Of a stretch of DNA of 64,000 bases, positions 17,904-58,145 are shown piece by piece. The translations under genes and the position numbers were made by a program. Origin of the DNA: Oikopleura dioica. Taxonomy: Eukaryota; Animalia; Chordata. Position 1 is the first letter of the stretch, and every line of letters starts with the position of its first letter. Below the pieces are notes generated by a model. That model saw only the letters and a list, made by a program, of their open reading frames with translations. It was not told where the DNA came from and searched no databases. The DNA lies in assembly GCA_907165135.1 (NCBI GenBank), contig OU015567.1:5642001-5706000 (forward strand), written 5' to 3'.

Positions 17904-19480
17904 TGATCACTTCCGGTGAAAAAAGGGACTCTCTGCCGCTTGAATTCGGCTTTCTTTTTTTAGAATAACTGTGTCAGGGTCCTGATAAAGCTTTTTTGGA
18001 GCCTTTTTTCCGAAGGATTTTCCCCCAAATTTTTCAAAAAGCTCGTTCAAGAGATTGGGATCGTAGTGGATCATTTTGAAGCCTTCCAGAGCCAGTTTTC
18101 CGCGCGCAAGCAGCCGCTGGATAAAGTAGAGACATTAAGACTGCTAATCGACTTCTCTCAATTCCACATTTGGCATTCTAAAAACGATAATTTTCAAAAA
18201 CTTTCTCAAAAGTTCATTCTTCGTTCATTTCCGCTTCTTTTTCAGAACCGTCAGTTGACTTGCTTTTCTCTGCTTCCGAAAGCTAAAATTTATCAATTTT
18301 GGACGACTAGAAAATCAGTTCATTACTGTACCTTGACAGGGCAGTCAGGAAGTTCCAAATGGCAGTGCGTTTCCTGAACAACTTCCCACTCGTCGTCATC
18401 TTCGCCGAATTCTTCCTAATCTGGCATTTGTTTTCGCGCTTTTCGCCTGCTCAAATATTCTTCGATATATTTCTCTCCCTTTTTTCATCCTCTCTCTTTT
18501 CTATTTCTGCTTTCCCAGCGCTAGAATCGACCTACATTCAAGATTTTCAGAAATCTCGGTGATTCAAATCTTTCGCTCCGCGCGCGGACCAATCAGCGCG
18601 CGCGGAGATTTCAAAGGCGAGAAAAAGAGAAAAGGCGAAAAATGGTGCGAAGGGATGAAAATGAAGAATACAGAGAAGGAGAGAACAAGAAATATAAAGA
18701 AGGGGTTTTCTTCACTGATTATTTTTGATCTGCACTCGATTGAATGTGAAATTAGTCTTCGCAATCGTCGTCCGTTTTACCAGCCCGGTGGCAACCCAGC
18801 TGCTTTGACGCTCAAGCCCGATTCCTTCGAACCAGATGAAGTGGCGCACTACCAAACCTTTCCACCCGCCGCGCAGAGATTATTCTAGCGGTGAGAAATC
18901 TGGTCGTTTCGATGTGGTCTATTTCTCCGACGATTTTGGTTACTCCAAAGAGCTGCATGCAAAATGTGATTGTAAGAGGATACATTCGCGCCGCTCTGCC
19001 AGAACTATTCAACCTTGTTATAAAATTTCTTACGATAAAAGGCATTATCAACTTTGGCATCTTTGAGGACATACCCAGGCCGTTGGTTCTCAAAAACATT
19101 CCGCTGGAGAAACGAGAAACGATTGTTGTAATTGGAGCTGCACCATCAGGAATTTCTACAGCCAGACAGCTTTCTTTTGAAGATTCTAGAGGCGGGGAGA
19201 GGATAGGAGGACGAGTTCATGTTTGGGCACCTTAGGTTCGTTTGAGTGAAAAAGCTCACTTATCGTCCATTTTAAGGTAGCTGTAGGAGCAATGGTCATC
19301 AACGGCCGCCAAAACAACCCTATCATCACCATCAGTCGTCAAATCTACCACGATGTCCACATCCTCGGAAGCGAATGCGACCTTTTTGTCAAATCCGAAT
19401 CGATTGCTCGTGGACCAGACTTGAGAATGGAGCATCATTTCAACACGATTTTCGATATTTTATCCGACTGGAGATTAGAC

Positions 19481-20680
19481 CAGGGGTCTAAATATCAGCC
19501 GAAATCCTAGTGCGAAAGCGAAGCGAAAGCGAACCATTTTTTCAAATTTTTTGCGAAGCGAAAGCGAAGCGAATTCTTCGCCCATGTGCGAAGCGAAAGC
19601 GAAGCGAAATATCATTGAAAATTGCGAAAAAAAGCGAAAATTTTTTCGCTTGAATTGAAACGCATTCTCGGCAAGAATCTTTAGCAATCAGCCACTCAAA
19701 AGCAAAGATGATTTCAAAAACCTATTTTTGGAGCAGAAAATAACAAAAAAATCTGTTATTGTACTTTTTCAGCTCGTCAATATAAGCCGAATGCTGGGTC
19801 TAACTGTTGATAATTCCAAGTTAGTAACAAACTCGATAGCGGAGGTGACCGTTCGGGCATCGTGAAGTCGGGGAAAACGGACAATTTTCGGGCAAAATGT
19901 GTTCGGCCGGGCATTCTCAGCCCCTTAAATTTGGCCGGGCAAAAGCGGGCATTTTGGCAAGTTCGGCACTTTCGGGGAATTCAGCGCTTTCGGGCATTTC
20001 AGTCTAGCCCGCGCCGAGGAAAATTCTTAAATTTCGCATTCTTTACAACAATTTTTACTCTCTTGCTCCTCTTACTGAATCAAAAGCCTCTCGAAACTTA
20101 TTTTTCAAACCCTTATCTATTGAAAATCCCATCACCAGGTCGACCGGGCATTCGGACGGTGCGACTCTTGGCCCTTCATTTCGGCCGGGCATTCGGATGG
20201 CCAATCGACGATTTCTTGCCCGAATGGTCACCCTTGCTCGATACTATCGAGTCGATAGGAGAGGAGATCATCTTCGATTCTAGATAAGCCCTGTTCATAA
20301 AGATCACTCTGATCATTCAAAAAATATTCTAGCATACTTACAAGCATACTAGCAAAAGGCTGGTGACAACGTGTATTCCGGGGATTTATTGAGAGTTAGA
20401 CCCACCATTAGACTCGTCTTCAGAAGACTGAGAAAACTTGAATTTATAAGAGCATCAATAAATTATTGACAAAGATGCCCCTCTCCAACTCTTTGATAAA
20501 GAATCTTCCGAATAGCAAAGTCGCTTGATGTGCGAAAATCTATGCGAAAATTTGGGAATTTTTGCGAAGCGAAAGCGAAGCGAATTCTGCTCTCCAGTGC
20601 GAAGCGAAGCGAAAGCGAATTCGCTTCGCTTCGCATCGCTTCGCAATAAAGCGAATTCGCACTGCGAATTTAGACCCCTG
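19481..20680. mobile_element. Non-autonomous hAT-like TIR element inserted in a KDM1B exon
   Basis: Terminal inverted repeats CAGGGGTCTAAAT...ATTTAGACCCCTG are flanked by direct repeat (g)attagac (7-8 bp). Subterminal GCGAA(A)GCGAA arrays lie near both ends. Removal restores SDWRLDKKKDIPL. Confidence 0.85.
19839..20237. mobile_element. MITE nested inside the hAT-like element
   Basis: Inverted ends GCGGAGGTGACCGTTCGGGCA / TGCCCGAATGGTCACCCTTGC, flanked by direct repeat tcgata. Internal CGGGCATT repeats. Confidence 0.75.
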
Positions 20681-21833
20681 ATTAGACAAGAAAAAGGACA
20701 TTCCACTCATCGACGCTCACAAAGAATACGTCAGCCAAAGCGCGGAAAGATACTCAAAAACAGAAATGAAACAGCTCGACTTCCACATCAACAACTTGGA
20801 ATACGAGCCTTTCTAGCGTTTCAGCGCTCAATTGGGACCAGAACGAGCGTTTTCCGCAATTTGGCGGGGATCATGCGATCGTGACATACGGATTTTCTGA
20901 TGTTTTGGAAGAATTGTCGAAACCGCTGAATACAGAGTTTGAAATTTTTCGGTTAACCGGTGGCGAGCATTGATCATTCTGGGGAAAAGGTGGTCGTCGA
21001 GACGACTCATGGGGAGAAAATTGAGGCGGATAGGATTGGATACAGATAAATAATAGATCTTGAAGCCGCAAGTGGCTGACCAATTTTGTAAAATAGCTTG
21101 AAATAAGACTTCTGTATCCATTTCAAAGATGCGTCGTGTCAATCCCACTCGCCCTCATGAAAAAGAAAACCATCAATTTCACCCCCGACTTATCTCAGCG
21201 AAAATGGCGCGCTGTAGAAAACATCGGCGCCGGCCTGATAGAAAAATGCCTCCTCCGCTTCGATTCAAAATGGTGGAGTTACAAGATCGGTGGCGCTGAT
21301 TTCTTTGGCTCCATCAGCGTTTCTGGCTCCGACTCAGGCGTCGAAGCTGATGATGAACACGATACGTCGGGAATTTTTAATGTGTTCTACGATATCAATC
21401 GCCTGGGAGTGATCATTTTACGCTCATGTCGATCGCAGCTGGAGCTTCGCTTGATATTTATCATTCGATGAGTGATAAACAGCTCGTTTCCAGTGCGATA
21501 GCGACGCTTCAAGGCAAGAGTCAATTAACAAGCTCCTTTTTACTTGAATTTTCGCCATTTTGTGACTCTTAAAAAAGAAATCTTCAAAGAAAACACGAGC
21601 CCAGAGCCCCTGAGCTTCCACATTACACGCTGGGGAAAAGAAGAATACTCCCATATGAGTTATTCTTTTATCAAACTCGGTTCAACCGGAAAAGACTACG
21701 ACAAAATGGCGGAACCAGCTTCCGATCGATTATTTTTCGCTGGAGAAGCCACCCATCGGTACGTTAAAGCGCATCTCTCTATAAAAAATGTTTGATAGTG
21801 TAGTAAAATGATCAGTAAAATGGTGTTTTACTG

Positions 21834-22496
21834 ATGGACTGCGACATCGAGAAAGAAACTTATATATCCGAGTGTATTCCTCTTTTCCACCAGGTGAGTA
21901 TAACTTTTGTTGCGCAGTTGTGATCTGAATTGTCAGGGCATTTCGCTGAAGCCAATGTTCCAAGTAGCGATGAGAACGGTAGAAGACTACTGCGAGCGGA
22001 ACAATCTGGCCATCGCTGGCTACTACGAGTCGCCCGAAATCGTCAAGAGCGCCACGCCATCGCAGTACGCGGAGAAGGTCGGCGACAAGCTCCGGGAGCA
22101 ATTCAAGGATGCCTTCCTTCTCCACAACATTTGGCAAGAAGACTCCAAGTTCGCCCTGAGACCGTTTGTCAAAGAGGTGCGAAATTTTATCGATTCTTCT
22201 AGAATCTGTGTTCATTGATTTGCATTTAGTCTGGAAAGTGGGTGTACTCTTCAAACAAGCTCAGCTTTGAGAACGAAAACGTTTTCAAGACCGTCGCTCA
22301 GCTGCATAAAGCCGACTTCTGCCTCGAACTTCAAGTAAGAACTTCTATTATTTTGCGCACGCATGGCCACTTCTAGGACTTTGACTGCTACCTCGATAAC
22401 TTCACGAACGACTGGACAAACAGATCTCTGCAAGAAGTGATTATGCTTGTGGACGCGCAAACCGAGCACCAAGACGCTAGTATAAAGGCGAAATGA
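21834..22496 (+). pseudogene. EMC8: EMC8/9 (ER membrane complex, neighbour-of-COX4 family), 5'-truncated
   Basis: Exons YISECIPLFH / GISLKPMFQVAMRTVEDYCERNNLAIAGYYES / DFDCYLDNFTNDWTN match EMC8/9. The conserved N-terminal KM.LH..KYP...VNG segment is absent. Confidence 0.8.
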
Positions 22497-22661
22497 CACG
22501 AATTGAACAATGGCGCTACTATTTCTACCCTTTCCTTCCCAAAATGTCTCACACCGAGCTTTACTTTCTTAGATTATTTCGAATTTGTGCAATCTTCAAA
22601 CATGTTGTGTGCGCTCCGTTAATTCAATAGCGTCGCTAAACTGATTTCGCTTGTTCAGAAG

Positions 22662-23124
22662 ATGTTGAACAGAACTCTCGCTCGACAGATCGTCTCCGTC
22701 AGAAACTTCCGATCTGGCTCTTTCCAGGTAATTCGCTTTAGAAAGAGGAGTTACTGATCTGCGCTTGTAGAACAAGTTCAACCAAGTCCCACTAAAGAAG
22801 GTCTACTGGGGCTCTGCCAAGCTCTCTGGTGAAGCTTTCCTCGCTGCCGGCGCCATTTTCTTCTTCTGGGCCTTTGATCGACTCGCTCGAGCTGACTTCC
22901 TTTACTCCAAGTTCCACATGTCTGCCTCTCACTTCCAGATGGGTACGCTTCGTGTTTGAGCTGGCACCAACTGACAAAATCGTTAAGATAACATCATCAT
23001 CGTCGATGGCAAGTACCGATACATCCCCACCAAAATGCACCCCGCCGAGCACGAAAAGGATGTCTCCTACATGTCCAACTTCACCGAGTACGACTGGACC
23101 CCTACTGATGGCAAGGATGGCAAG
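22662..23124 (+). CDS. Small putative mitochondrial single-TM protein, 3' end fused to UBA1
   Basis: Three GT-AG-spliced exons: [22 protein letters not shown] / [43 protein letters not shown]... / [12 protein letters not shown]... The Arg-rich acid-free N-terminus resembles a mitochondrial presequence. No own stop codon. Confidence 0.5.
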
Positions 23125-24110
23125 GTCTCCGAGTCCTACGGCTCTTCCCGCGATGCACAAGAGAAATCCATTCCCATCTGTACTTTGAAAAATTTCCCAA
23201 ATGCCATCGAGCATTGCCTTCAGGTACCTTTTGAGCCTATTTTGGTCAAAGTATGACCTTTTTTAGTGGGCGCGAGATAATTTTGAAGGACTCTTTACTG
23301 GACAGGCAGGCTCTGCGAAACAGTTCCTTTCCGATCCCGCCGACTTGTCGCAAAAACTGAGAAGCTGCCCGGCAACGAGCCAATCACCTCTGCTCAGGGA
23401 GTCGTTGAGTCAACTCGTTGACTTCCTCATCGACCAAAAACCAAATGACTTCAATGACTGCATCGAATGGGCGCGCCACAGATTCGAAGAGAACTACGTC
23501 ACCACCATTCTCCAGCTTCTTCACCGCCCTCGTCGCCGGTCTAATCTCTGCCGAGCTTTACAAGATCGTCAACGGAATCGACGACATTGAAAAGTATCGA
23601 AATACGTTCATGAATCTCGCGATTCCAGCGTATTCCTTCTCCGAGCCCATGACTCCACCAAAGGTGAAACTGAAAGTATGGCTCTTTTATACAAAACAGT
23701 TTTAGAACACTTATTTTGGAGACCAGCACTGGACCCTCTGGGATCGATTTGACATCGACGGACGAAAAGAAAATGGCGGAGAGATGACAATTGGCGAGCT
23801 CCTCGACCATTTCAAGAATGATAGGAAGCTTGAGGTCCAGATGCTGAGCTCTGGAGTGACACTTCTCTACTCCTTCTTCCTCAACCCGCCGAAGAAGAAG
23901 CAGGACCGACTTGCCATGACTGTCAGGTAAGCTCTCTACACTTGTTACTGCAGCTAAATGCTCATTCTTTCTAGTGAGGCAGTGAAAACAGTCGACAAAA
24001 AAGAAATCGGCGCGCACGAGCGATACCTCGTGCTCGACGTCTGCTGTAATGACATGACAGAAGCCGAAGAAGATCAAGACGTTCCATATCTTCGCTATTG
24101 TTTCCGATAG
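23125..24110 (+). pseudogene. UBA1: UBA1 ubiquitin-activating enzyme E1, C-terminal half only, internally deleted
   Basis: [42 protein letters not shown] (active-site Cys region), DCIEWARHRFEENY, ALVAGLISAELYKIV, WTLWDRF, MLSSGVTLLYSFF and VLDVCCND...DVPYLRY*. There is a frameshift at about 23346, an insertion at 23409-23421 and a large deletion at about 23523. Confidence 0.95.
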
Positions 24111-24417
24111 TTCAAAGGTTGAATAAACCAATTGAAAAACATGAAAATTATAAACAGAAACTCCCTTTTTCGATTTTGTGCATTCATACCGCGCTTACTT
24201 GTTACTTCTGCACTTCTTCATGTAAAACACGGCCTGTTTAAATTTAGCTGCAATTTCCCAAGAAGATACATTGAAAAATTACACACCGTAGGCCATTTTT
24301 ATCTTAGTACTATAAATCATTGATTTATGGAAGATATTTATGGAAGAAAATTGAAATAAAATATGGGAGAAAGGATCCCATATTATTTTCTTCAGACAGT
24401 GCGCTATCGGATTGAAA

Positions 24418-27400
24418 ATGAAACTAAAACAGAGTGATGAATCCCCTTCGTCGGATGATAATTCGAGAGAGCGTGTCATTGACGAGGGTGAATCTTCAGA
24501 AATAGGTAAAATTAAAGCCAGTTGACGTATTTTCATGCAATTCCGCGTAGATATCCCCCCGCTGGAACGAGCTGCTGAGTTTTCGCAGCCTTCACCCCAC
24601 TTCAAATCGCCGGAGAAGACTTCTAACAAATCATCCAACTCAAAGGTGGCCTCAAATCTTGATCCCGACGAGCCAAGTAAGCGATCAAATAAATATTGAA
24701 AATAAACTCGAATTATAGCGCCGATTCCCCAACGAAAGACAAGTTCTCCAAAGGAATCAACTGAGATTCCCCCTCGAATACCGTTAGCGGAGCTTCTCCA
24801 ATCTCAGAAGAGCACCGATGGCCGGGAAACTCAGGAAACTCAACCTTCTCAACTGAGCCGATATGAGATGATGGAGCGAGCTGCTGAGTTTTCTCAAAGA
24901 ACTAGTCAAGAAGAACTACTCAATGATCAGGTGCCTTCGGATCCAGAGATCTCCCTCTCCGTCAGCGGAGAACTTTTCGATAATGAGGTGCCTTCGGATC
25001 CAGAGATCTCCCTCTCCGTCAGCGGAGAACTTTTCAATGAGGAGCTGCAGCCAATGGATACTACGGAGATTTCCCAGCAAGAAGAAAAGAAAGCGAACTC
25101 CTCTCAAGGCTCCTCCGTCTATGAAACGCCTGAAAAGAGTCTACCGAAAACGCCGAGTAAGGCTGATCAATCAGCACCCGCAACACCTCCTCAGCCCTCG
25201 AGAAAGCTTCGGCGAAGCCTCTTCAATGAAAATCAGGAAGAAGAACCGATGGATTCCCCGGAGATAATCATGGCGTCCTCAGGAGACACGACGGTGAGAT
25301 CAAAAAAGGTCGAAGATTCCTGGTCGCAGGTTTCTGGAGAGACGCTACGAGAGACTGAAGGGAGAAAAAGGAGAACTCACGATGCGCTGAACTTATGCGC
25401 CGGGAAGTCTCAAGAAGAAAGAAAGAAGAAGTCACAAGAAGGGATAAACCAGACCCAGCGAGTGGGCGATCTTTTAAACCACACAGCGCTTGCTCTCGAC
25501 TCACAACAGTCAACCCAAGCAACTCAAGCTCGACAAGAGTCAACATCAGCAACTCAACTTCAACCTCAAGAAGAGTCACAAGGGACTAATGAAAAATATT
25601 TTACGCCTCCCACTTCTCCAACCTTGGAGAAAGCCTCAGCCACGCAGAAGACTTTCGACGAGGATTTAGATGACGATTACTTTGCGAAGCTCAAATCGCC
25701 GAAAATTAACAAGCAAGCAGATCAGGCTAAACAGCAAAAAAGAGTTAACAGAAAAATGCCGAGATCGAGAGCAAAACCAACGCGTGATGAGGTCAAAGAA
25801 TCGGTGGCTAAAGCCTGTCGAAAATTACAAGCTGGCGGTATTAGTGGACGTCTGGAATTCGCGAGGGCTTTTATTTTAAGAAGAAACCGAGCACGAGATT
25901 CGAGCGATCCCTTGAATCGAGAACTCGAAAATGCGACTTCTTGGGAGCCAAAAGTACCGAATGCGAATTTTTCTCAAAAAAGAGTTAACAGAAAAATGCC
26001 GAGATCGAGAGCAAAACCAACGCGCGACGAGTTGGATAAATCTTTGGCTAGAGCCCTTCGAAAATTACAAGCTGGCGGTATTAGTCGACGTCTGGAATTC
26101 GCGAGAGCTTTCACTTCAACAAGATACCGACCACGAGATTCGAGCTTGAATCGAGAATTTGAAAAAGCGATTTCTTGGGAGCCAAAAGTGCCAAACGTGA
26201 ATTTTTCGAAGCCCGTTCCAGGATCATCAAGCCGTTTCAGAAAGCCTCTTCCAGTAGCGGAAAAGCCTGCAAAAAAAAACCGGGACCTTCGAAATCTAAA
26301 GCTTCAAAATCGCAAAGTCAGGAACGCTCGCAGCCACGAGAAGAGCAGGAGTCAGCTCATAACTGGTCGCAGCAAGTTCTGTTCGATGAATCTGCGGAGG
26401 ATCGACAAGCACTATCGCCTGAACATGATCAGTCCCCACCCGCGCCAATTGACAGAGAGGACGTTCGCGAATCTATGTTTCCCACCTCAAACAAGAGAAA
26501 GCTTCAGACTCCTGAAAAGGAAGCGCAGGGCGAAGCAAGCGCGAAAGATCACGCAGCGAAAAGGAGCAAGCACGAGAAGGAAAATATAACGCCTAAGAAA
26601 AGCGCTTCAAAGCCGACGATTCTCAAGCCAGCTGTGGATATCACCATTGCTCGTCGTCCAGGAAGAGATATTCAACGAGCAACTTCCTCACCGAAGCCTA
26701 ATCCTGCCTCGGTGAGAACATCGTCGCGACCGAATATCCGACCACCGCCACCACCACCGGTCCCTGCTACGAGAGGCCCTGCTCCTCCACCACCAACTGG
26801 ACCAACTTTTCAGCCTCGAGCAGCTACTCCAGTCAGTAGGAGAGCTGGAAGAGGATGTATGGTCCAGGAAGATGTCCTGAGCGAGATTTCGGACTTGTCT
26901 TCTGCATTTGATAATGACAGTCCAGTTAGAGGAGTCGGAAAGATGCAGCAAAAGAGTGCGAAACTGAGGCATGACGAACCAACGTGCAGCAAGAATTTAA
27001 CACCTCCAGCGATGCCACCAGATGCTGATCTTTCTAGCTTCTTGAACTCGAGCGAGGATGAGGAAGTTGACACATCGGAAGTTTCAGAGATTTCAGGCAT
27101 ATTCGACAACACTGCTAACGTCACCAATCATACGTCCGAGAGAAACGTTGCAGTCACTAATGGTACCTCCGAACAGCCTGAGCCTGCGTTTTCTGGCTCT
27201 TCTTTAGATGTTTCCTCCAGAAGGTCGGCACGAAAGGACGATAAAGGCTCTTCAATTGCTGATGCTGTAAAAAGACGACGGAAAGAGAAGGTAACGATTT
27301 GTAATCATGAAAAAGTATTCTAACTTTACCTTAGTCTGACGAGTCCGCCAGTGAAGTGTCAGTCCAACCAGCTTCCAGCTTCAAGCCTTACAAGGTAAAC

Positions 27401-28065
27401 ACACTTCAACTTCTAGCGCTCATTGAATAATTTCCTAGTGCCCAGAGGCGAACTGCGAGATGGCCTTTGTAACATCTAAGGATTTGACGAGACACAGGCG
27501 GTACAAACACACCCACGAAAAACCGTTCAAATGCACTTTGTGCGAATACGCTTCCGCCGAAAAATCAAATCTTCGTCGCCATTTGAAGTCAGTTCAACAT
27601 AGAATACTAAAAAAACTTCGTTATTTATTTTATTAACCCTAACCCCTAACCCTAACCAACCCTGGATAAAAGTTTTTCAGAACTCACTCGGGCGAAAAGC
27701 CCCACGAGTGTCCGCACTGCAAGGCGCGATTTACGCAGAACAGCAGTCTCAAAGTGCACGTCATGCAGCAGCACACGAAGACCGCGCCGAAGTTCGAATG
27801 TAAGTAACAAAAATAAGTTATTTGTTGTTGATTTCAATTCCGCGTTTTAAGGCGAAATTTGCCACACGATGTTTGGCCGAAAGTCCGACTTGAATGTTCA
27901 CTTGCGCAAGCAACATTCTTATCAAGAGGTAACACCGGTTCTCGTTCTTTTTGTTTTGTTTATCGCCGTTTCGTTTAGATTCCCATGCAATGTCGCTACT
28001 GCGAAGAACTCTTCCACGACAGATGGTCGCTCATGCAGCATCAAAAGACGCACCGCTCCAAATAA
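24418..28065 (+). CDS. CTCF: CTCF-derived C2H2 zinc-finger protein with five fingers and a long disordered N-terminus; one homopolymer frameshift at about 26271-26279
   Basis: Spliced C-terminus [140 protein letters not shown] carries CTCF-diagnostic strings ([35 protein letters not shown]). All introns are GT-AG and in frame from ATG 24418. Confidence 0.85.
24931..26210 (+). repeat. In-frame tandem duplications in the CTCF-like N-terminus: 57-bp unit (19 aa) at 24931/24988 and about 240-bp unit (about 80 aa) at 25741/25981
   Basis: Directly visible repeats [16 protein letters not shown] x2 and [18 protein letters not shown]...SWEPKVPN x2. Confidence 0.9.
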
Positions 28066-28293
28066 TGGCGACCCACGGGTGAAGGAAAAATACTAAACCC
28101 CTTTCCTTCTTCTTCACTGTATATAGTTCACACATCACCTCACTTTTATACTCTTAATTCACTGCCTTCCTTTATTTTTTCATTACTGCCTAACTATGAT
28201 TTTAAATTAACGTCTTTTCAATATTAAAAATCTTTTGAAAAATTTAAATACTGCCAAATCGGAAATTTCAATAAACTGACATGATAAAAAAGT

Positions 28294-28915
28294 GTGTATG
28301 AGCCTTCTGAGGATTCGTTTGTCTTTCTTGATGGCATTGAAAAGGAACTTCAGGATCAATGTTTAGGCAAGAAAGTCAGATACAGAAGCATGTTTTGTAG
28401 CGCTTGTTGATTATTTCCACAGAAAAGCCTGGTCTAGCAGTTGAAATCGGGGGTCATTTCATGTGCCTTTGCGAGTTGGACAAAAAGCTACATTCTTTCT
28501 TTTGACATCAACGAGTTATGTTCCGAATGCACGAGTAAAAATGCAAAGAACAATTCACTTATAGACAGCGCCGTAGACAACGCGGGTAGTTGCCTTCGTA
28601 CAGGTCTATTCGATTTTGTCTTGCTAAAGCCTCCGTATGTCGTGACAACCAGTGAGAAGCTCCACAAACCACCAGAAGAGCAAGATCTGAGTGCTTCATG
28701 GAACGGTGGAAATAATGGAACAGAACTTTTATTATCCAGTCTTTTGCAAAAGCACTGAAGTTGTTGAATAACTCTGGTTGCTTGTACCTAATAGCGATAA
28801 GAGAAAACATTCTGGAAGAAATACGCGAGTTTTTGAATGAACGAAGTTATTTGATGAAGATTGTTATTGAAAGAAAACCTGGGCGAGAGTATTAATACTT
28901 GCTCAAGGTTACTCA
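28294..28915 (+). pseudogene. N6AMT1: N6AMT1/HEMK2 methyltransferase pseudogene
   Basis: VYEPSEDSFVFLDGIEKEL, AVEIG..VISCAF, DIN, (N>K)PPYV, WNGGNNG and GCLYLIAIREN follow the family. The SAM-binding GxGxG is collapsed at 28449-28453 with a frameshift, NPPY reads KPPY (28627), and a premature TAA lies at 28893. Confidence 0.85.
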
Positions 28916-28940
28916 TTCATGCGTGAATTTCGATGAGCAA

Positions 28941-30966: not shown

Positions 30967-31606
30967 GATTGCTTTTTATTTAATTAGTAGTAATTATTAT
31001 TTAAATCTTATCCTGTTTCATTTTTTTTCTTTTTATCGTTCGAGTACTTTTTGTATATTTGAAATTCGCAACATAAAATTTTCCGTGCCTTGTTAAAACA
31101 GAGAAAAACTAGCGCCTAAACTTTTTCAACTCTTTATTTCCATCCTCGATTCTTGATACATAAAAATTAATTTGCTTATATAAATAATAAATGTTGAATA
31201 ACTGACCTTTCATTTCTGTCGCCTGCTCTTTCCCTAAATTACAAAAGATTTTACATTTGCTTCTCTTAAAAACATCATCGTTTCAGACCTTGCTTCTTGA
31301 AATCATTCCGTACTTTCCATATTGAAATTAATAAATTATTTAAAAAATCACCCTCTTTTCTTTTTTACCTTAATTTCAAGTAATGAAATGAGTTAACTTC
31401 TGAGACGACCTTCTTTACCTAAAGCTCGTCGCATTGCTCATTTTACAGTTCCCTGGGGAATTGTGCGGGCAGTCATTTTGTATTGATTTCGCACCTCCGA
31501 CTTTCCCCTCTGGCCGCACATCTTATTTTATTATTATATTTTTCTTTTTATTCAGAAGCGAAGTGAGACTGAGGGAGTAGAGACGCCTCTGTTTCGCTAT
31601 CTAAAA

Positions 31607-37011: not shown

Positions 37012-37012
37012 G

Positions 37013-37024
37013 TGGTATCAGAGT
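37013..37024 (+). promoter_or_regulatory. Primer-binding site (tRNA-iMet type)
   Basis: TGGTATCAGAGT, one base after the LTR end. Confidence 0.8.
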
Positions 37025-42990: not shown

Positions 42991-43245
42991 TATTGGGATC
43001 TTAGATTCGTTAGACTCCCTCGTCCCCTAAGGTCACTTGCTTATCTAGATCGAGCTTTGCTCGGTCGCCGCCGTGTATTTCTCTTCATTCGGTAATTCAC
43101 GCAGTTCGTGAATTAACCTCTATTTTACTCCAGCTCGAAATACAGACGTCAAGATACTTTACTCGTTTTCTTCACTCGTCCAGATATAGAGAGCAGGCAA
43201 ACTACGCTAGAAGTGGGAGATTCAGCAGAAGCTAGGATCCCTTCA
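42991..43245 (+). repeat. 3' LTR
   Basis: Matches 36757-37011; preceded by GGGGGGG PPT. Confidence 0.97.
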
Positions 43246-47586: not shown

Positions 47587-48103
47587 GGAAGGGTTCCTCT
47601 CGTGGTCATTTCGAGAAATGTTCCTCTCGTGGTCATTACTCACCGGCTTATGAAAGTTAGGGTCTCCCAATTTCCCCCGAATTTCCTCAAAGATAGTGCT
47701 TACACGCTTTATATATTTATAATAAGAGGTCATCAATTAATTTTTTAAATGAATAAAAATCGAGATGAATTGATGAAAACAATTTTTTTAATCGAAAAAC
47801 CTGAGAAAGATAATTACATTAAATATAGTTTGCCTCATACGTTTGCCTCTTATTCTAAAGAGAATTTCTTCTGGTTTGTGCAAATAAATATACTTATTCT
47901 TATTTGAAAATTATTGAAAATTTAACTCAATCAAATGGACCTTCTCATAGTATCCTTGAAAAAATGCTTGGAGACCCAACTAATCATCAAAATGCTCCGT
48001 GATCGCAAGTCTCTACGTCATGACCACGAGAGGAATATGACCACGAGAGGAACATGACCACGAGAGGAACATTTCTCGAAATGACCACGAGAGGAACCCT
48101 TCC
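47587..48103. mobile_element. 517-bp TIR element with 9-bp TSD (CATTATTCC), Mutator/foldback-like, in a HYDIN exon
   Basis: Ends GGAAGGGTTCCTCTCGTGGTCATTTCGAGAAATG and its reverse complement, with subterminal 16-bp repeats. TSD at 47578-47586 and 48104-48112. Confidence 0.92.
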
Positions 48104-50967
48104 CATTATTCCTGTTCGCGCAAAACAATTGTTGCCCAACCGACTCTAGGCGGACCAAAAGCAGGGTTAGATCTCGGACGTCAATTTGCAACGAGAGAAT
48201 TCAGGAAAGAAATTACCTTCACAAATTACGGAAGAAGACATCATGCGCTCATTTGGTTTGTAGCCGGTTACGAGCGACTTTCGCAAAGAGACATCAACGA
48301 GAGAAGGGCTTATGAAGAGCGGAAAAGATCAAAAGATGTAAAATTCAAAAGCGCACCTGACTTGCCTCCACCACCACAGAGCATTTTCGAGCTGTCAAAA
48401 ATGGACTTTGAGTTGGAACCCGGACAAAGTATCAAAGTCAAGCTTTTAGGTTTATCGCCGGAACCTGGAACAGTCCGAGAGACACTCCAATGCCACGCTG
48501 TTATCGGTCGGAAAAAAGGTCGAGAGAGAATCTTCAGCATTCCAATTCACTGTCAATTCATCGAACCAGTCCTTCTTATTTCCCACAAGAAACTAGAATT
48601 CAGATTCGATAAGGATACTAAAGACGAGCTTCAGGATGTTGAAGGATCAACAGAAATTACAAATAGTGGAGATGTCGATTTACGATTTGATCTCAAAACT
48701 GTTTCGCCATTTTATGTTGGAAAAGTCGGTGAGAAATGTATCAGTCACGTTTTATTCCCTGGCCAAACAGTAGAAGTCAACGTCGTTTTCCATACTGGCT
48801 TCCAGAAGCATTACAGATCTTCAAAAACGATTTCTCAGCTTCTCATCGATTACAAAGATCATCCAAGTCAGGATGTCGTCGAGCTTGTTGGCGAACTAAA
48901 CTTTCCGAACATCGAGTTCAATCACGCGGACATCAATTTTGGCCCGATCAGAAACGGAGCTGAAAAGGCAGCAGTTGTTACAATGTCGAATAAATCGCCA
49001 ATGACGACAGAGTATCGCTGGTGGTTCGAGATTGAGGATGAGTTAGGAGTTTTCTCAAAGCGAAAAGAACAGCAGGACGCTCTTGTTCGATCTGCATCTG
49101 GGCTTGGTACAAGTGCGCCCTCTCGTGAAGCCACGAATACTGATGGAACAGAACCTGAGCTTGCTGATTTAGCCAGAGATTTACCCGGTATCGACGATGT
49201 TTTCGACATTCGTCCAATTTTCGGCAAACTGGAGCCTGGGGAGCAAATTCAAACAACAATTCTATTCAATGGTCATCAAGACATCAACGCTCTCTGCAGA
49301 GCTGTTTGTGAAGTGGACGGCGGGCCACAGTACGAGTTGAACATTGCTGGAGCTTCTGCTGATGTGAGATACAGTGTGTCAAGCGAGACGATAAAATTTA
49401 GAGAAGTGATGTTCGACAGTTTGGCGGAGAGACAATTCACGCTCAAGAATACTTCTTTTGTTCCTTTTGATTTCTGTCTTTTGGGAGGAATAAAAGATTT
49501 GTCAGCAATCAATCACGAGTTTTTCATATCTCCATTTCATGGTCATCATCTTGGATCCTTAAGGGTCCTTAAGATTACGATAATTTATCTTCCTGGTTTC
49601 CCGCACAACTTTGAGAAAGCATTTTCTCTTATTGTTGCGAATTTTCTTCCGGCTGAGATGAAAATTTCTGGAAATGCAGTCTTCCCAAGAATATCCCTTG
49701 ATTTGCCTAGAAAAGGAGGAGACGAAGATCTTTCTGCTATCATCGATAATATTCGTGGAGATATGGAGAAGGAGCGGCCGGATATTTCCGAGCGTGAAAT
49801 CGAACTAGAAGCAGAAAGACTCATCATTTCGGCAAAAGCCCAAGATATGCCTGTCCATGAACTGATGATCTACCAAAAACGACCGCCTTTCTATTTGGCA
49901 GACTATGAGCTTGATCTTGGACCGGTGATTCTCGGTGATGTTCGAAAAGCACTGATTAGAATCGATAATTTCGGAGACATCCCTGTTGCTTTTGCACCAG
50001 ATGTACGAGAGTTGGATAATTTTGGCTTCTTTTGTGAAGTCTCTAGAATTGGGAAAATGGCGCCGGGTCATACTGTCTCAGTAGAAATCACCTTTGATCT
50101 GTTGACTTACCAGTCGGTCAAGTCGGTCCAGTATGTGTTCCTATTCAAATCGAGCGAGGACCTGTTGTGAATCTTCATATCAAAGCTTTGGTTACTATGC
50201 TGAGACTTTTTGCTACTCTCGATAAACAAAACACTCCAGAGCCGAGAATCAACGTTGATTTTGGCGAGGTAGAATGTGGTCGCGTAGAAGTCGTGACTGT
50301 GCAACTCTACTATGAGCTACAGGTTGAGTCATCCTGGAAATAGCAAAAGTACAAAGACAAGAGATTCTTCATTGATCCTCGACTTCCATTGCACCAGAAA
50401 AAGGCATTGAAAGAAGCTCAAAAGCCTCTCCCGCGAATATTTCAAGTAATACCAGAAGAAGGCGTTCTAGCACCGGGAGAACGATCTACAGTTCAGGTGG
50501 AATTCATGCCGACAGAAGAAAGCACTTTCGAAGAAAATCTTCTCATCTTTGTTGAAAACTCGACCCAACGAATGGAATTTAACGTCTCTGGCTCTGGGGT
50601 TTGTCCAAGTCTCATTTTCTCCAAATCACCGATTGAGCTCGGTCCAATTATGCCTGATTCTGCGGGAGCAACAGAGATATTCAGTATCAAAAATAACTCG
50701 AAAGTCGAGGTAGAATTTTACTCGTTGGACTTTGATGAGAAATATTTGAAAGAAGAAGAGATGATAAGAAATTTGGCCGAGAAGTATTTCAATGCATTCC
50801 AAAAAGTAAGAATGCCGACTCGAAGACCCGGTCAGAGCTTACCCTTTATCGAATACATCAAGGAAGAGACTCCTCCTTCCGTTTCAGAAGACGACGAATT
50901 GATCAAAACTGAGCCTAAGGACCCTCTCGAGCTCGCGTTGGAAAAACATTCTGGAATCGATAATTCG

Positions 50968-51382
50968 GGGGGTACTGAATAGCGCCGCCTTGCGCCGCCC
51001 TGCGCCGCCCGGTTCGGTACAAACCGGGTCTCGTCTGACCAAATCCTGACCAAACTAAATGATCGGAAAAAGAGCGAGAGCTGGGCCCCGCCAACCCAAT
51101 GAGTTCTCTACCAGAAAATGCGCGCGTAAGGGCCTCTGGCCCGTCGCGTGCTTAATAAATTGGTGATTTTATGCCAAAATATGGAGATAATTTAGACTCC
51201 CGCTAATTTCACCCTAAATTATTAGTTTTCTTTTTTCTAGTGGTCAGACTATTCAAATATACAAGAATAAACGTTCTGATAAGAAAACAGAAAATAATCA
51301 TCATTGAAACGCCGAAAATCTTCGAGAAGAAAAATTTTAAGCAGGACTGGGCGGCGCAGGGCGGCGCTATTAAGTGACTCCC
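50968..51382. mobile_element. 415-bp TIR element with 9-bp TSD (GATAATTCG) in a HYDIN exon
   Basis: Ends GGGGGTACTGAATAGCGCCGCC / GGCGGCGCTATTAAGTGACTCCC. TSD at 50959-50967 and 51383-51391. Removal restores GIDNSPEGLAARNR. Confidence 0.9.
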
Positions 51383-51986
51383 GATAATTCGCCAGAAGGT
51401 CTTGCTGCACGAAATCGACTTGGTTTCGGTGGAATTATGTGGGGAGCTCCGTTCAGTGGCAAGTCAACTTTGGCAAAGCAAATGTCTGAAAATACGATAC
51501 TGTTGTTGTAACCATCGATGAGATACTCGCGAGTGCCGTTCAATCACCTAAATCAGCTGCGAGCAAAACAGCTCGCGAAAAGTGCGAAGAAGAGTCAAGA
51601 AGATTGGAACAGGAAAAAATGAATGCATTGGAATCAGAAAATACGACAAAGGAAGCTCCTGCATTGAGAGATGATGCATCTGTGATGACTATGAGAACCG
51701 GCGTCACTCAGAATACAAGCAAGCCATCAAAAAGAGGAGGGAAGGTCAAGAATATCCCGGAAGTCCAAAGCCTTCTGACCCAGAAAAACATCGAGCGTCT
51801 CGAAAGCGAACTTACCGACGCTGCAGAAGCCAACCGCCCACTGGTCTCAACAGTTTTACCAGTCGATCTCGCCGCTGAAATCATCTCAGAAAAACTTCAA
51901 GAAAAAGAGTTCTATAAAGGAGTTATATTCGATGGAATAGAGTCGAGTTTTCTGACAAAGCTCAAGGATAGCATAGAAGTTTTGCT

Positions 51987-52237
51987 GGCCACCGGGTACT
52001 CCCAGTACCAATTTTGGCAAGGCAAAATTTTAGTCAGCCAGGAACGCCCGCTCTGCGGGTTCTGTGGTAAGAAACTCACTGATTAGGCCAAGATATAGTT
52101 CTATTTACCCGCTTACTATTGTTCCAACTGAAATATTTTGTTAAAATATCACTCGAAAAGCCGAAATTGGTACTCCCAGTACCAAAATTGGTACTGGCAG
52201 TACCAAAAAGCTTTGGTACTGCGAGTCCCCGACGCCC
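51987..52237. mobile_element. About 250-bp TIR element with 8-9-bp TSD (GTTTTGCT[G]) in a HYDIN exon
   Basis: Ends GGCCACCGGGTACTCCCAGTACC / GGTACTGCGAGTCCCCGACGCCC, with internal GGTACT..CAGTACC hairpins. Removal restores IEVLLKALNNRKH. Confidence 0.85.
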
Positions 52238-53097
52238 GTTTTGCTGAAAGCACTTAACAATCGAAAACATCTTCGGGTGTTTCACTTGCCACTCACCATG
52301 GCAGATTACCTGGAAAGGGTTGAAAAAGCAAAGCGCAAAGCAGAAGAGGAAGAAGCAGAACGGGTCAGGATAGAGATGGAAATGATCAGAGATATGACCG
52401 AGGACGAGTACGATGCTTTGCCAGAAGAAGAAAAACAGCGAATTGACAATATTCGGTAAATAAAACGAATATTTTCAGGTGGTTTATTTTCAGACTTGCT
52501 TAAAAGAAAGAACGCATAGCTGAGGAAAAAAGAATTGCAGAAAAAAAGCGAGAAGAAGCCGAACGACTTCCTGAACTACAAGCAGAAAGCGCGAAGAAAA
52601 AAGGGAAGGGCTCAAAATCGCATCTCAATAAGAGCGACTCGACGAAATCTTCAGGTAAAAATAGAAATGATATTTCGATGAAAAATTGGAATTCTAACTT
52701 TAGCTCCGCGAGCTCGCTTAAATAGCCGACAAAGTAAGGAAAACCTAAACTTGCGTCGGTGGCGGAGGAATCCTCTAGCCACCGACGACATCGCTCTGAG
52801 ACGGAAGTGGAGCGTAGCTCAGAGAGCGCAACGCGTGGCACACTCGCCCGGGGCCAATCCACCCGCTCGCTATTCAGTGATACGCGCGCGCCATCTACTG
52901 GTGAACTTTTAATAGTTGCCATGAAAGAATATTTTTTAAAATTCGAATCAAAAATATTTCTGGAAGAAAATTTAATGAATTTTCTTGTTCAGCTGTTTTT
53001 AGAAATAGCCATTTTGTTTTTTTAGATGAGGCCCCATCTGGGAAGAAGGAGAAAAGTAAATGGAGTCAAATTAAAACAGCGGTGGCTATTGCCGAGC

Positions 53098-53250
53098 TTG
53101 GTACTTTTAGCCCACTAGAAAAAAACAACAATATACTTTTCTCATTATATATTTTGACTAACCCCATATTCGCTTCTAACGATATTGCGAACGGTTTCAA
53201 AATGCTAACTAAAAATTCAGGTCGAGTAACTGATGATCAGCCGGGACTTA
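53098..53250. mobile_element. 153-bp insertion flanked by 7-bp direct repeat GCCGAGC
   Basis: Direct repeats at 53091-53097 and 53251-53257. Removal gives in-frame AIAEPQVQWEKT. No convincing TIR. Confidence 0.55.
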
Positions 53251-56200
53251 GCCGAGCCTCAAGTTCAATGGGAAAAAACAGGTGCAGTGATAGTCATCAA
53301 ATTAAATTGCCAGTGTGAAACATTCACTAATACTTTTCAACAACACTGCACCACCACCAACACGGGATCGCGTTCTCTCTCGAGCCGAGAGTGTTGCTTC
53401 ATCCCGGCATCTTGGGTAACCGATGCATGAGAAATTATGACATTCATGATTTTTATGATTCACTGATTTAAAAATTTCATTGAAATTTTCTAATGAGCCT
53501 TTTTCATAAGGTAGCAACCGTCTTGCCCACTTTGCCGTTCTGTAAAAATTCATGTTTAACTCTGATTTAGACGGAGAAAAGGCAGAAAAATCTCAGAACA
53601 AACTGGTCTTCCTGAACAATCACCAGCTGAAAAACTTATTGCGTTCCGCTTTTTCAATGCTGCTGAAACGCAACTTGAGCCGAGTGATAAAGTAGAGTGG
53701 ATATTGAAATACTGGAATATGGTCGAACAAGATGTTATCTCACAAGTAAAACAGACTCAGGAAGATGAGTCGCCGAAGAAAGCGAAATCAAGAATGAAAC
53801 CTGAAGAAATAAAAGCCTAGGAAGAGAGAATTGCGGCAGAGATTGAGAACGAATTGAAAAAGGAAGAAGTCGGCGTGATAATGATCGAAATTGAAGCTGA
53901 GTGCGAGCCCCTTTCGCTCGAAAAAATCTACGACCAGCTACCAACTGTTGAAGAAGTAGACGACGATCTCGGTCTTGGAGTGAACGGACCACCGATTCCT
54001 GAGCCAATCGAATTCTCGGTCGTTCCAAAGCCGCAAAAACGCCACCCGCCTTATCACGACAAGCAAAAGTTCTTTAATCTAATTGCTTTGAATCAAGACG
54101 ATCCAAATATCAACTCAGATGATCGTATTCAAGAATCACTGACAGAATAAGTAATGACAGAAGCAAGTGACAAACCATCAAGCAGCTCGAAGAAAAATCG
54201 AGGTAAAGGAAGAAGCTCCAGCAATGCGAGCAGAGCAGAAACAGATCGGCCAACTCGATCGCCACTTCCGGAAGCAGAAACGCAACCAGAAGACAAATTT
54301 TATCGGCTGCAGGATTATCGTTGGGTCCTAACAGCCAGGCAAAGAAGTGACGCTTAAGGGTCAAGTTCGACTGTAACAAAGTTGGAACCATCGATTGAGA
54401 ACTCTCATTCGAAACAGTCAGCACACGACAGGTTTTTAAAATAGCAGTCCGCGGAGTTTGCGTTTTCCCAGACATTATCAGAGATATCAAGAAAATCTTC
54501 ATGCCACCCAAGCCAGTCGAAAGTCCAGATGGAATTATCAGCCCTATCGGGACTCTTGTCGAAAAGAAAAAGAAAACAATCGTCAAATTTGAACCTGCGC
54601 TCATTGGGAAGATGGAATCAAAGGAAAAAGATTCTGGCGCTGCTAAATTCAAAATTGTGAACTCTGGTCCCATTGAAGCTGAAGTTACATTTGCCATGAA
54701 AAAAGGAGACTCCGTTTTTACACTTGAACCGTTCAACATGAATCTGGCGCCGTTTGAGAAGAAGATTTTGACAATAAATGCTTTCCCGAAATCTTCTGGA
54801 ACTCATGATGACGCTCTTATCGTCTGACAACCCTGTTCCTGCGATTTTCCCCGTTCAAGTAACGAGAGTTCGCCCAGAAGTTCAAATATCATGGAATGGC
54901 GAAGGAAAACCAATTAACTTTGGAAAAGTGATGCTCCATCGTCTGTCGAGTTAGATTTTGCATTTGTTCAATCCAACTGATCTCCCAATAAACTGGAGAA
55001 TAGAAGGCCTGGATAACCTGGGCGACGAATTCTCGCGAAATTGCGATTCGGGAACTATCAATCCGAAGGAAACCTTTGATTTCATTCTTGATTTCAGAGC
55101 GCTCAAAGCTCAGAACCACAAGCGAAACATACGCCTTGTCGTGAGCGATACTGACAATATCATCGGCGACTGTCAATCCGAAAGGATACCAGTTTTTGCA
55201 GAAGCTTACGATGTAGCTATAGACATGAGCTTTCCAAAGGGCTGCGATGGCGGGCTAGAATTCGGCACAAACAAGGTTCATGATGAGATGAAGCAAGTTT
55301 GAACGTTGAAAAATCGCGGGCGATATGAAATTTCGTTCAAATTTACTCTCGAAGATCATCTTTTCAACAGCGAGCTGTCGCGCTTTTTCAAAATCATGCT
55401 TCAGCAGGGCTGTTTATTGCCCAACGATAGGCCGATGCAAGTAAACATCGTTTTCAACCCACCAGAAGAGTTCCACCTGGCTAACCTACCAATCATTAAA
55501 TGTCACGTGATAGAAGCAGTAATCGGCGAAACCATCGCTGCAATTCCGATCAAGGTTTCAGCTCGATCAGTGTTTTCTCAATATGTGATCACGCCTTCCA
55601 AAGATGTCGATTTCGGCCCAGTTCCGTATGGAAATCATAAACGAAGCTTTGAAATTGAAAATCATCGAGAATTTGATTTCAAGTTCGCTATTTCGAAGCT
55701 GGTTAAACCTGGCTCTCCACCAAAGTCAGAGCGGCCGAAGAGAACCAAAGATTCGCGCCAGATCTTTGCTCAGTCGAGAAGACCTGGTCAACTGATTAGA
55801 GAGCAGACGCAAGTAATGAAACTCGCTCATGGGCCTTTTATTATCTCACCTGGCTATGGAAATGTTCCTGTCGGAGAATCAATCGTCATCAATGTTGACT
55901 GCAATGTAGAGGCATCGAAGAAATTCGAAGAATTCATCGCTATTGAAATCGCAGACAGAGAAGTCCGTAAAAGCCGGCAGGAATCAACTATAAATTGATT
56001 GCTGAAGGATGCCAGCCAGTTATTGACACAAAGAATAATGAAGCGATCTTTGAAGAACACAGAATTCTTCATTCAATCGAAGAAGCTATTCATTTGCTAC
56101 TTTTTGACTTGCAATGTGGCATCTACGGCCAGATGGAGAGTCAGTTCAACTTTCCGTTTTCGACAGTCGGCGTTCCGAATTCCGTTCGCTTCAAGATCCT

Positions 56201-58084
56201 CAACCCTTCGAAACTGCCATGCAAATTCGTCGCTTCCGTAAAACCACTTATTCCAAAAAACAGACAACGGGTTTCAGACAGCTTCGAATTTGACCCTCCA
56301 CGCGGTCAAATAACTCCGCATGAATGTGTTTTTGTAACAATAACAGTCAAGCCAAAAGCAATTGGTGAATACTGCGCCCTATTCGAAGCGGCTGTCGAAG
56401 GCGCACCAAAAGCTAAGCCGTTGGTTTTTACGATGAAGGCTGAAGCTTACTTGCCAAGAGTAGAACTTGTCCATCCTGCCGCAAACCCTACCGATGGTAT
56501 GAGACGACTGTATTTTCGAAATGCAATGATTGGAGAAATGACTTCAACAAAGATTCAGCTTCGAAACACTAATAGGCTCCCAGCAAGGGCGAGGTTGGCA
56601 ATTTCAGACTCACCCGCGTTCAAAATAATGGACAAAGAAGAAATCATCAATGAAAGAACTGATGTTTGTCTAAATCAAGGAGAGACGGAGATTCTTGAAG
56701 TGTTCTTCTGTCCTGCTGATATTGGCAACTTCGAAGCTGAGCTAACCATGAAAATCATCAACAACGACTTTGAAATCAGCGAAGCTCTGCTTTTCGGTGA
56801 GTGTATTCAACCTGACGTTATGTTGACAAATCTCCCGTCATTGCCTACTAATCTTGTCGGAAAATACTCCAAAGCTGCTCTTGATTTTGGTGGAATCGCT
56901 ATAAACGAAACGCAACGAAAGAGCTTTACGATATCGAATAATCTCAATGCTGCAGTCCGATTTGAATGGGATGAGCATCTAGCGATTTCGTTCGAGCCCT
57001 CTGTTGGACATATTCCGGCTAAGTCGACTATTGACATTCTCGTCGCTCTGCAATCATCGGAAACGATCGAACTTGACGGCGATGTTGTGGAATGCACGAT
57101 TTTACCAATTATTTACGAGGAAGAAAGCAGTTCAGTTCAATGGGATGACCGGCTCAAAATAATAAAATGGATCGATGGCAAAAACGCATCAGGAGGGCGA
57201 ACCAAAGAAAAGGTTATTGAAACAGAAGAAGAACCAAAATATGAAACAAATGGAGATGCTCGCGCTTTGCCAATTTATGTTTCTGGAATCGTCGATTATT
57301 CCCCCCTCACGTCATAATGTGCCCGGCAAATGAGCTCGGGTGACGACACGTTTAGGATTATTAGGCGCGGGATAAGTCTTTCTAACTCTAATATCAGGTT
57401 ATTTCCATTCTGCCATCTCTCCTTGTCACAGCAACAGAAAGTGCTTCAGCAGAATCGATGACTGAATTGCTTGAAAACAGCAGCGGCAAAAACAAACGAC
57501 TTTACGAAATGCTCATGTACGCCGGTCTTCAGAGCAGCATGGAACCAGCCGGAGATGCGGAACATACAACTGACTTTTCCCGATTCGCTGCCATCATGAA
57601 CTTCATTCGAGTGAGTTCTTGAAACATTAATTTGTCAAAGACATCCAAATAGTCATTGTCGTTCATTTTCCTTTCGAACACAAATTTAGAGCAGAAAATT
57701 TCCACCTTAAAAGATTCAAACGCTCACCCCGAGTACTACAAACAGACCGTTGAAAATGACTACAAGGTTCAGCAGCCTCATCAAGGATTCAGCCCAGGTA
57801 CTTTAAATACTTTCATCTTATTTCAAAGACGTTATTGTTCGAGGAGTTTATTTTCATCCTTCAAAGTACTCTCTCACTCGCCCAAGATCCGATCATTCCC
57901 TACTTGTACATGAAAGATTCTGACAACCACGAAAACTGCGCACTTATTTGATGGCCCGTTTGCTAAACCCAGAGCTCTTCCAGAACAACGGAAATAATAT
58001 GTCCACGGCTTTGGCACTCCTTCAATAATATCTTGTTCTTATTACTGTTGTCTCGCTACCTCAAACTTTCGCCCAATAAATTAT

Positions 58085-58110: not shown

Positions 58111-58145
58111 TCATTTGAAAATTTATTGATCTCAATTTAAAGAAG

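Follow-up and report, generated by a model that had tools for sequence, protein, structure and literature searches.

A likely pericentromeric gene graveyard: a mosaic of decayed segmental duplicates beside the chromosome 2 centromere gap of Oikopleura dioica

The window described here is a 64,000-nucleotide stretch of Oikopleura dioica DNA (assembly OKI2018_I69, C5:5,642,001-5,706,000) that belongs to the final 65 kb of the short arm of chromosome 2. It contains copies of seven recognizable genes: KDM1B, EMC8, UBA1, N6AMT1, the gene for V-ATPase subunit a, a trypsin-like serine protease and HYDIN. All seven lie on the plus strand, as a first-pass annotation of the sequence had noted, and each shows damage in comparison with a source copy located elsewhere in this genome, the damage to EMC8 being limited to a missing exon 1. 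The copies are disabled while the sources stay open; for KDM1B, an intact source is suggested by longer open frames. The gene names are backed by Pfam and PDB comparisons (V_ATPase_I, UPF0172 for EMC8, UBA_E1_SCCH, MTS, Trypsin, HYDIN Ig-like domains and Amino_oxidase, with KDM1B as the top PDB match). The first-pass annotation took these genes for a single block of about 39 kb. Instead, positions 12.1-57.3 kb of the window are a mosaic of at least eight independently derived duplicates, which were copied at the DNA level, differ in age and orientation and end abruptly.

The assembly comprises 64,281,565 bp in 19 scaffolds, among them C5 (16,158,756 bp), which is the autosomal chromosome 2, C4 (14,533,022 bp), which is chromosome 1, C1 (17,092,476 bp), which is the pseudoautosomal region (PAR), and C2 (12,959,145 bp) and C3 (2,916,375 bp), the X- and Y-specific regions (XSR and YSR). 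Chromosome 2 is interrupted by a 500-N gap at 5,707,009-5,707,508, 1 kb past the end of the window, and the coordinates of this gap coincide exactly with the published boundary between the short arm (1-5,707,009) and the long arm (5,707,508-16,158,756) (PMC8008620). The centromeric regions were skipped in the assembly and are represented by 500-bp gaps, those of chromosome 1 and the PAR lying at 5,191,657-5,192,156 and 6,029,625-6,030,124, respectively (PMC8008620). At its other end, the window continues without a break into unique genes of the short arm, and chromosome 2 has telomeres at both ends. No large duplicate was found for the first 11.5 kb of the window, which carry a formin and a GATA gene. 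The CREC gene, which the first-pass annotation had listed with these two as unbroken and to the left of its block, lies inside the duplicated zone, which begins at about 12.1 kb.

The pieces of the mosaic and the sequences that separate them from the gap are the following, in window coordinates.

12109-18754: segment A, a multi-copy pericentromeric unit with CREC/EF-hand and UPF0489 genes (minus strand), 90-96% identical to chromosome 1 5,163,649-5,175,750
18754-21797, plus strand: segment B, a KDM1B fragment, 98.7% identical to chromosome 1 5,175,998-5,177,835
21818-23116, plus strand: segment C, an EMC8 copy with downstream sequence, 98.15% identical to XSR 5,540,128-5,541,423
23121-24315, plus strand: segment D, a UBA1 3' fragment, 93-96% identical to PAR 9,305,813-9,307,712
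24367-28057, plus strand: segments E-F, a copy of a multi-copy gene, colinear with PAR 7,931,357-7,927,0xx (minus strand) and 94.6% identical to chromosome 2 5,745,321-5,747,629 (minus strand)
28059-28920, plus strand: segment G, an N6AMT1/HemK2 pseudogene, with the source open reading frame at PAR 7,926,730-7,926,185 (minus strand)
28921-29865, plus strand: segment H, a fragment 89% identical to chromosome 1 1,899,806-1,898,846 (minus strand)
29959-31300, plus strand: start of segment I, the 3' part of a Ser/Pro-rich gene, with its breakpoint at PAR 8,668,642, within the source open reading frame 8,668,496-8,669,035
57302-58145: the 844 nt between the HYDIN breakpoint and the satellite, which have no match to the PAR source past 57301, no search aimed at their origin having been made
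58146-64000: a 254-bp satellite (22 copies at 99% by Tandem Repeats Finder), which reaches the central gap of chromosome 2

Segment I is the largest piece. It extends over 27 kb (29,959-57,301) and is colinear with PAR 8,668,642-8,686,990 at about 93-94% identity. The source sites of the mosaic lie at PAR 7.93, 8.67 and 9.31 Mb, XSR 5.54 Mb, and chromosome 1 1.90 and 5.16-5.18 Mb. Segments E-G match PAR 7.931-7.926 Mb in inverted orientation, with an identity of 77-96%. The gene in segments E-F belongs to a family of at least six copies, which is represented, besides the one in the window, by an inverted pair at PAR 7.88 and 7.93 Mb and by copies at chromosome 2 5.745 Mb, at the start of the XSR and at the distal end of chromosome 1 (14.49 Mb).

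That the copying took place at the level of DNA is seen from the V-ATPase a introns, the intergenic spacers and the neighbouring genes, all of which are colinear with the PAR source. Processed pseudogenes, which are intronless and poly(A)-tailed, are ruled out, since the introns were kept and adjacent genes and spacers were duplicated together. Transposon capture of the Pack-MULE or Helitron type was also considered: the junctions have fillers or blunt joins and no shared termini, and the elements with terminal inverted repeats (TIRs) and target-site duplications (TSDs) are simple insertions within the pieces; termini enclosing the whole mosaic were not searched for. The junctions that were read directly include a blunt one between segments G and H, fillers of about 15, 51 and 93 nt, the last of them before segment I, and a 9-nt templated duplication between segments C and D. 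Breakpoints fall within exons of EMC8, UBA1, the Ser/Pro-rich gene and HYDIN, and owing to these mid-exon cuts several pieces were dead on arrival and not killed later.

The pseudogenes and the mobile elements inserted in them are as follows.

19484-20690: a 1.2-kb TIR DNA transposon splitting the KDM1B fragment, with a 7-bp TSD (ATTAGAC) and perfect 13-bp TIRs
31607-34948, plus strand: the V-ATPase subunit a pseudogene, all exons of which align to the protein P0001
35316-35818: a high-copy repeat between V-ATPase a and the protease, with an 8-bp TSD, absent at PAR 8,673,91x
35852-36756, plus strand: the 5' part of the trypsin-like protease pseudogene, 88% identical to PAR 8,673,909-8,674,862
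36757-43245, plus strand: a gypsy-type long terminal repeat (LTR) retroelement in a protease exon, with 255-nt LTRs (36757-37011 and 42991-43245) that are 100% identical
43246-44880, plus strand: the 3' part of the protease pseudogene, with a 14-nt deletion at 44729, directly after GDSGG
45200-57301, plus strand: the HYDIN pseudogene, 3'-truncated mid-exon; the source frames of 2051 and 2511 codons are open
47594-48103: a miniature inverted-repeat transposable element (MITE) in a HYDIN exon, with a 9-bp TSD (CATTATTCC) and 29-bp TIRs
50968-51382: a MITE in a HYDIN exon, with a 9-bp TSD (GATAATTCG) and at least 12 copies
51988-52238: a MITE in a HYDIN exon, with a 9-bp TSD (GTTTTGCTG) and at least 10 copies

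The KDM1B fragment is truncated at its 5' end, spans the end of the SWIRM domain and the amine oxidase domain, and is part of a set of at least seven genome copies. The transposon that splits it is missing from the chromosome 1 KDM1B copy and occurs more than 20 times genome-wide. The KDM1B source was characterised from match tables, and the longer open frames at chromosome 1 0.656 Mb suggest that an intact gene resides there. The EMC8 copy begins inside exon 2 and is otherwise clean, exon 1 with the start codon being found upstream of the breakpoint in the XSR source. The UBA1 fragment begins mid-exon at 23,121, just before the catalytic-Cys motif, and a 521-codon frame with the ThiF, FCCH and 4HB domains, which lies upstream in the PAR source, is missing from the window. 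What was copied of UBA1 has a 701-bp deletion, five small indels (-1, -1, +13, -1 and -14) and a TCA to TGA change at 24120. In the N6AMT1 copy, the NPPY motif has become KPPY, the GSGSG stretch is frameshifted, and a second frameshift and a stop are present, while the PAR source is open and has both EIGSGSG and NPPY.

V-ATPase a was compared with P0001, a protein of 853 residues whose source is a transcript contig from another lineage. In the window copy, TGG has become TAG at 34128, one T has been added at 33774, and the conserved stretch before IHTIEF carries 21 additional nucleotides (34518-34546). An in-frame insert of 42 nt near 32.98 kb is absent from the transcript-derived protein and represents a tiny intron. 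The high-copy repeat downstream of the gene shows very high word depth in all DNA runs. In the protease, indels of -13, -10 and +14 fall within the 238-codon frame of the source, and a TTAA-flanked element occupies 44104-44698 in an intron. The gypsy element, with a gag frame of 601 residues and a pol frame of 1202 residues, is absent from the PAR copy and is very young. HYDIN carries seven nonsense changes (50095, 50341, 53818, 54148, 54396, 54952 and 55300), more than 15 frameshifting indels and a 138-nt deletion, and the frame of the source runs on for another 3.8 kb beyond the point that corresponds to the breakpoint at 57301. The three MITEs in HYDIN are Mutator-like, belong to different families with at least 10 genome copies each, and their sites are empty in the source.

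A stereotyped kind of insertion recurs among the lesions, in which about 7 nt of flank occur three times, the second time in reverse orientation (X, inverted X, X), for a net gain of 14 nt. Insertions of 14 nt are found at 30567, 31747, 36440, 45887 and 45952, one of 13 nt at 23409-23421, and a composite one of 21 nt at 34518-34546; one more is present in the source, at PAR 8,683,194. Deletions of 13-14 nt are likewise over-represented. The inverted-plus-direct insertions could be a signature of snap-back repair or the footprint of transposon excision.

Many of the breaks in the reading frames are tiny introns of about 50 nt. That the lesions are nothing else was considered and rejected, since comparison with the sources and with the protein of the spliced transcript reveals exonic stops, frameshifts and insertions. 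Proteins were compared one exon at a time, either by reference or with tblastn searches of genomic DNA. One-base indels in homopolymers may be assembly noise, and the reverse control, in which frames open in the window are compared with their state at the source, is inflated by out-of-frame stretches that follow frameshifts.

Short reads contain the window version of this DNA. For positions 29,700-35,600, 49-75% of the sampled words were found in six runs (five samples from three studies, labelled as the species or coded "organism B"), and small shares of them in three marine-metagenome runs from two further studies. Short-read contigs from three runs of three studies are of the window type, with 0-2 letters off the window where the PAR copy differs at 7-18. 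In run X1, one contig spans the TAG at 34,128, and the extra T at 33,774 is also kept; in run X5, one contig spans the 21-nt insertion free of gaps. Most of the other letters in the read table come from the cross-mapping PAR copy. From one bulk RNA run, 37 partial reads mapped to a 45-nt repeat and none to the rest, with no cross-mapping even from the source gene; as the mRNA of the source does not cross-map, this run is probably from another cryptic lineage.

Over the 27-kb piece, the window and the PAR differ by 5.5% overall, by 12% at third codon positions and by 2.2% at positions 1 and 2. Fourfold degenerate sites differ by 15.4% compared with 5.6% in introns and intergenic DNA, which implies either strong noncoding constraint in this genome or a history that is incompletely explained. 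Compared between window and PAR, HYDIN has a ratio of nonsynonymous to synonymous divergence (dN/dS) of 0.10 and V-ATPase a one of 0.055 (range 0.05-0.11). The low ratio and the codon-position pattern indicate that most of the divergence of this piece arose under constraint.

Polarising the amino-acid differences in V-ATPase a with the outgroup protein assigns all 16 of them, the stop included, to the window and none to the PAR. The polarisation was restricted to amino-acid changes, because the outgroup cDNA (75-78% identity) is saturated at synonymous sites. As all polarised changes are on one side, only the window copy has been relaxed, and its decay phase was short, corresponding to roughly 1-2% neutral divergence. 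The eight stops found in about 11.5 kb of coding sequence agree with this value. A similar amount of unconstrained change is observed in the UBA1 fragment, which differs by 2.2% at positions 1 and 2, and in the EMC8 piece, which differs by 1.85% overall, while the N6AMT1 copy is older than both. The genes had been described in the first-pass annotation as recently killed; this holds for the V-ATPase-protease-HYDIN piece with its short relaxed phase.

The pieces fall into two layers. The older one (segments A and E-G) belongs to a family of low-copy repeats found beside each of the three centromere gaps, and the younger one, specific to chromosome 2, consists of the EMC8, UBA1 and V-ATPase-protease-HYDIN pieces. 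Copies of segments A, B and E are also found at distances of 9-28 kb from the chromosome 1 and PAR gaps, where they keep one polarity towards the gap. Past the chromosome 2 gap, on the long arm, inverted copies of A, E and F/G form a degenerate mirror image of the window. The distances to the gap are 46-49 kb in the window versus 52-55 kb on the long arm for A, 38 kb on both sides for E, and 37 versus 27-28 kb for F/G. Members of the family occupy 15.6-28.5 kb of the window and 5,734,933-5,762,544 of chromosome 2, PAR 6.008-6.021 Mb (plus strand) and 6.044-6.087 Mb (minus strand), and chromosome 1 5.164-5.178 Mb (plus strand), the flanks of the PAR gap having been characterised from match tables. 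With copies at the chromosome 1, PAR and chromosome 2 gaps, the family has undergone secondary spread among pericentromeres. Segment A is tandemly doubled at chromosome 1 5,163,649-5,175,750, has an 88% match at PAR 6.04 Mb and an inverted copy at chromosome 2 5,759,375-5,762,544. Segment B is contiguous with A in one unit, yet its best match, the 98.7% identical chromosome 1 copy, is recent.

The 254-bp satellite array continues past the window to chromosome 2 5,706,949, within 60 bp of the gap, and the complete unit is present at the chromosome 2 gap only. As a marker of the chromosome 1 gap the satellite is ruled out, since the array there has a period of 51 bp and shares 40 nt with it at 85%. 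Positions 113-185 of the unit match a 72-bp satellite at the distal end of chromosome 1 (14.50-14.53 Mb) at 95-97%.

Taken together, the region is very likely a pericentromeric graveyard of segmental duplicates beside the centromere gap of chromosome 2. Stretches of 1-27 kb, complete with introns and intergenic DNA, would have been copied from the euchromatin of the PAR, the XSR and chromosome 1 when breaks near the centromere were repaired by copying ectopic DNA. The blunt joins, short fillers and 9-nt templated duplication suggest that the pieces were joined end to end beside the satellite by end-joining or template-switching repair. Most of them would have arrived non-functional, cut in exons, and the rest would have been redundant. 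Since then the pieces appear to have gathered nonsense changes, small indels, 14-nt inverted-plus-direct insertions and transposon hits; they presumably persist and decay because they are redundant or truncated and lie in a repeat-rich setting where recombination is presumably low. The working genes are likely to be those at PAR 8.67 Mb (V-ATPase a, protease and HYDIN), PAR 9.30 Mb (UBA1), PAR 7.93 Mb (N6AMT1) and XSR 5.54 Mb (EMC8), with KDM1B probably at chromosome 1 0.66 Mb. The first-pass annotation had expected functional copies of UBA1 and V-ATPase a elsewhere, and both were found on the PAR. Of the three origins it had proposed, only a segmental duplicate captured beside satellite heterochromatin holds; nothing points to a B-chromosome-like segment, and the case of a Y-linked stratum is discussed below.

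The divergence of the 27-kb piece might also be explained by a long-lived functional duplicate cluster on chromosome 2, which remained under purifying selection through most of its existence (Ks about 0.17) and fell silent and decayed only recently, for example by the spread of centromeric heterochromatin or by a truncating rearrangement. The dN/dS of 0.05-0.11 and the greater conservation of noncoding DNA than of fourfold sites look as if both copies had been functional for most of their divergence, and a relaxed phase of only about 1-2% is in line with a late silencing. However, both ends of the piece are cut in exons and abut unrelated fragments, so that at least two of its genes could not work as arranged, and the long retention of four adjacent duplicates, including HYDIN, a gene of the single-copy type, would be unusual. 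The overall divergence, moreover, exceeds the published heterozygosity of about 3.6% (PMC8008620) by a factor of only about 1.5, so standing variation suffices to account for it. A long functional life of the cluster is for these reasons considered quite unlikely. The exon-cut ends and the modest overall divergence favour a fairly recent copy of a PAR haplotype that already differed from the reference, and the additional synonymous divergence most likely predates the copying, as standing haplotype variation in a very polymorphic species.

An assembly artefact, in the form of a misplaced or chimeric contig, an uncollapsed haplotig or lesions caused by Nanopore errors, was also considered, given that the assembly is Nanopore-based with merging of haplotypes, that repeats are abundant in the region, which stops at a scaffold gap, and that some one-base indels lie in homopolymers, one of them in the PAR copy. 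Such an origin is highly improbable, as the Illumina-derived contigs of three studies reproduce the window sequence with the TAG stop, the extra T at 33774 and the 21-nt insertion, and as nonsense substitutions, indels of 13-700 nt and TSD-flanked transposons with empty source sites are not error types. A degenerating Y-linked stratum, or another sex-linked non-recombining one, would be suggested by the male sex of the sequenced animal, by the location of most sources on the PAR or XSR and by the many adjacent dead genes, which resemble Y decay. But the window is contiguous with autosomal genes of the chromosome 2 short arm, and the YSR is a separate scaffold of 2.9 Mb. Instead of forming one homologous X interval, the sources are spread in both orientations over three sites on the PAR, the XSR and chromosome 1, and the same repeat family occurs at the chromosome 1 and PAR gaps. 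The probability of a sex-linked stratum is therefore close to nil.

Several points weigh against the interpretation of the region as a pericentromeric graveyard. Fourfold sites are about three times as divergent as noncoding DNA, which standing variation fits only if noncoding DNA is strongly constrained, and which the long functional life of a duplicate fits too. Among the sources, V-ATPase a on the PAR has a one-base frameshift in exon 2 (A4 at 8,670,553, where the frame and the window copy need A5), which is probably an assembly error. The silence of the window copies is assumed. None of the short-read contigs examined bridges a junction between segments, whose order is therefore taken from the Nanopore assembly. 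Finally, the centromere is a central gap inferred from Hi-C and not functionally mapped, the real centromere having been skipped by the assembly.

Oikopleura dioica is reported to lack classical end joining. It could be speculated that EMC8, UBA1 and possibly also segment H and the 27-kb piece, the young parts of the mosaic with their similar unconstrained divergence of about 2%, were stitched together in one complex template-switching event in such an animal, and, separately, that the polar, mirror-image repeat unit beside all three gaps reflects centromere flanks that exchange sequence and act as sinks for gene fragments; this proposal is rather unlikely as it stands. If true, the region would be a readable fossil of the duplication and repair behind the extreme scrambling of gene order among Oikopleura lineages.

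The genome of Oikopleura dioica ranks among the smallest and most rapidly evolving in animals, and dead gene copies can serve in it as a neutral yardstick for the mutation spectrum, including the 14-nt inverted-plus-direct insertion and the frequent MITE hits. The junctions of the mosaic record how broken DNA is rejoined in this species. The chromosome 2-specific 254-bp satellite and the repeat family common to the three gaps provide landmarks for the unassembled centromeres, and gene models in the window should carry a pseudogene flag. No description of such a region in Oikopleura was found: the word "pseudogene" is absent from the OKI2018_I69 assembly paper (PMC8008620) and from the genome-scrambling paper, and no description was among the wider-search matches listed.

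In kind, the region is a known one, a pericentromeric segmental duplication with unprocessed pseudogenes in miniature; it is an ordinary gene graveyard and not a decaying sex chromosome. Pericentromeric segmental duplications with unprocessed pseudogenes have been described in human, other primates and Arabidopsis. As in those genomes, DNA-level copies from several non-homologous chromosomes lie beside satellite with their introns kept, genes are truncated at the boundaries, copies have spread between pericentromeres, and decay proceeds by point lesions and transposons. Unlike them, the pieces here are only 1-27 kb long, in a 64-Mb genome with introns of about 50 nt and an unassembled centromere, and copies mirror each other across the gap and share one polarity on the three chromosomes.

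Y strata share with the window the runs of neighbouring genes with independent disabling lesions and transposons in a setting of low recombination. However, the window is autosomal, draws on several unrelated sources, has genes cut mid-exon and lacks a single homologous partner interval. Complex rearrangements also arise by template switching, as in microhomology-mediated break-induced replication (MMBIR) or fork stalling and template switching (FoSTeS), and by polymerase-theta end joining. The use of several templates in both orientations, the blunt, filler-containing and templated-duplication junctions and the small inverted-plus-direct insertions are all similar to the products of these processes, although in the window the mechanism is read from the anatomy of the junctions alone and may have acted in one event or in several.

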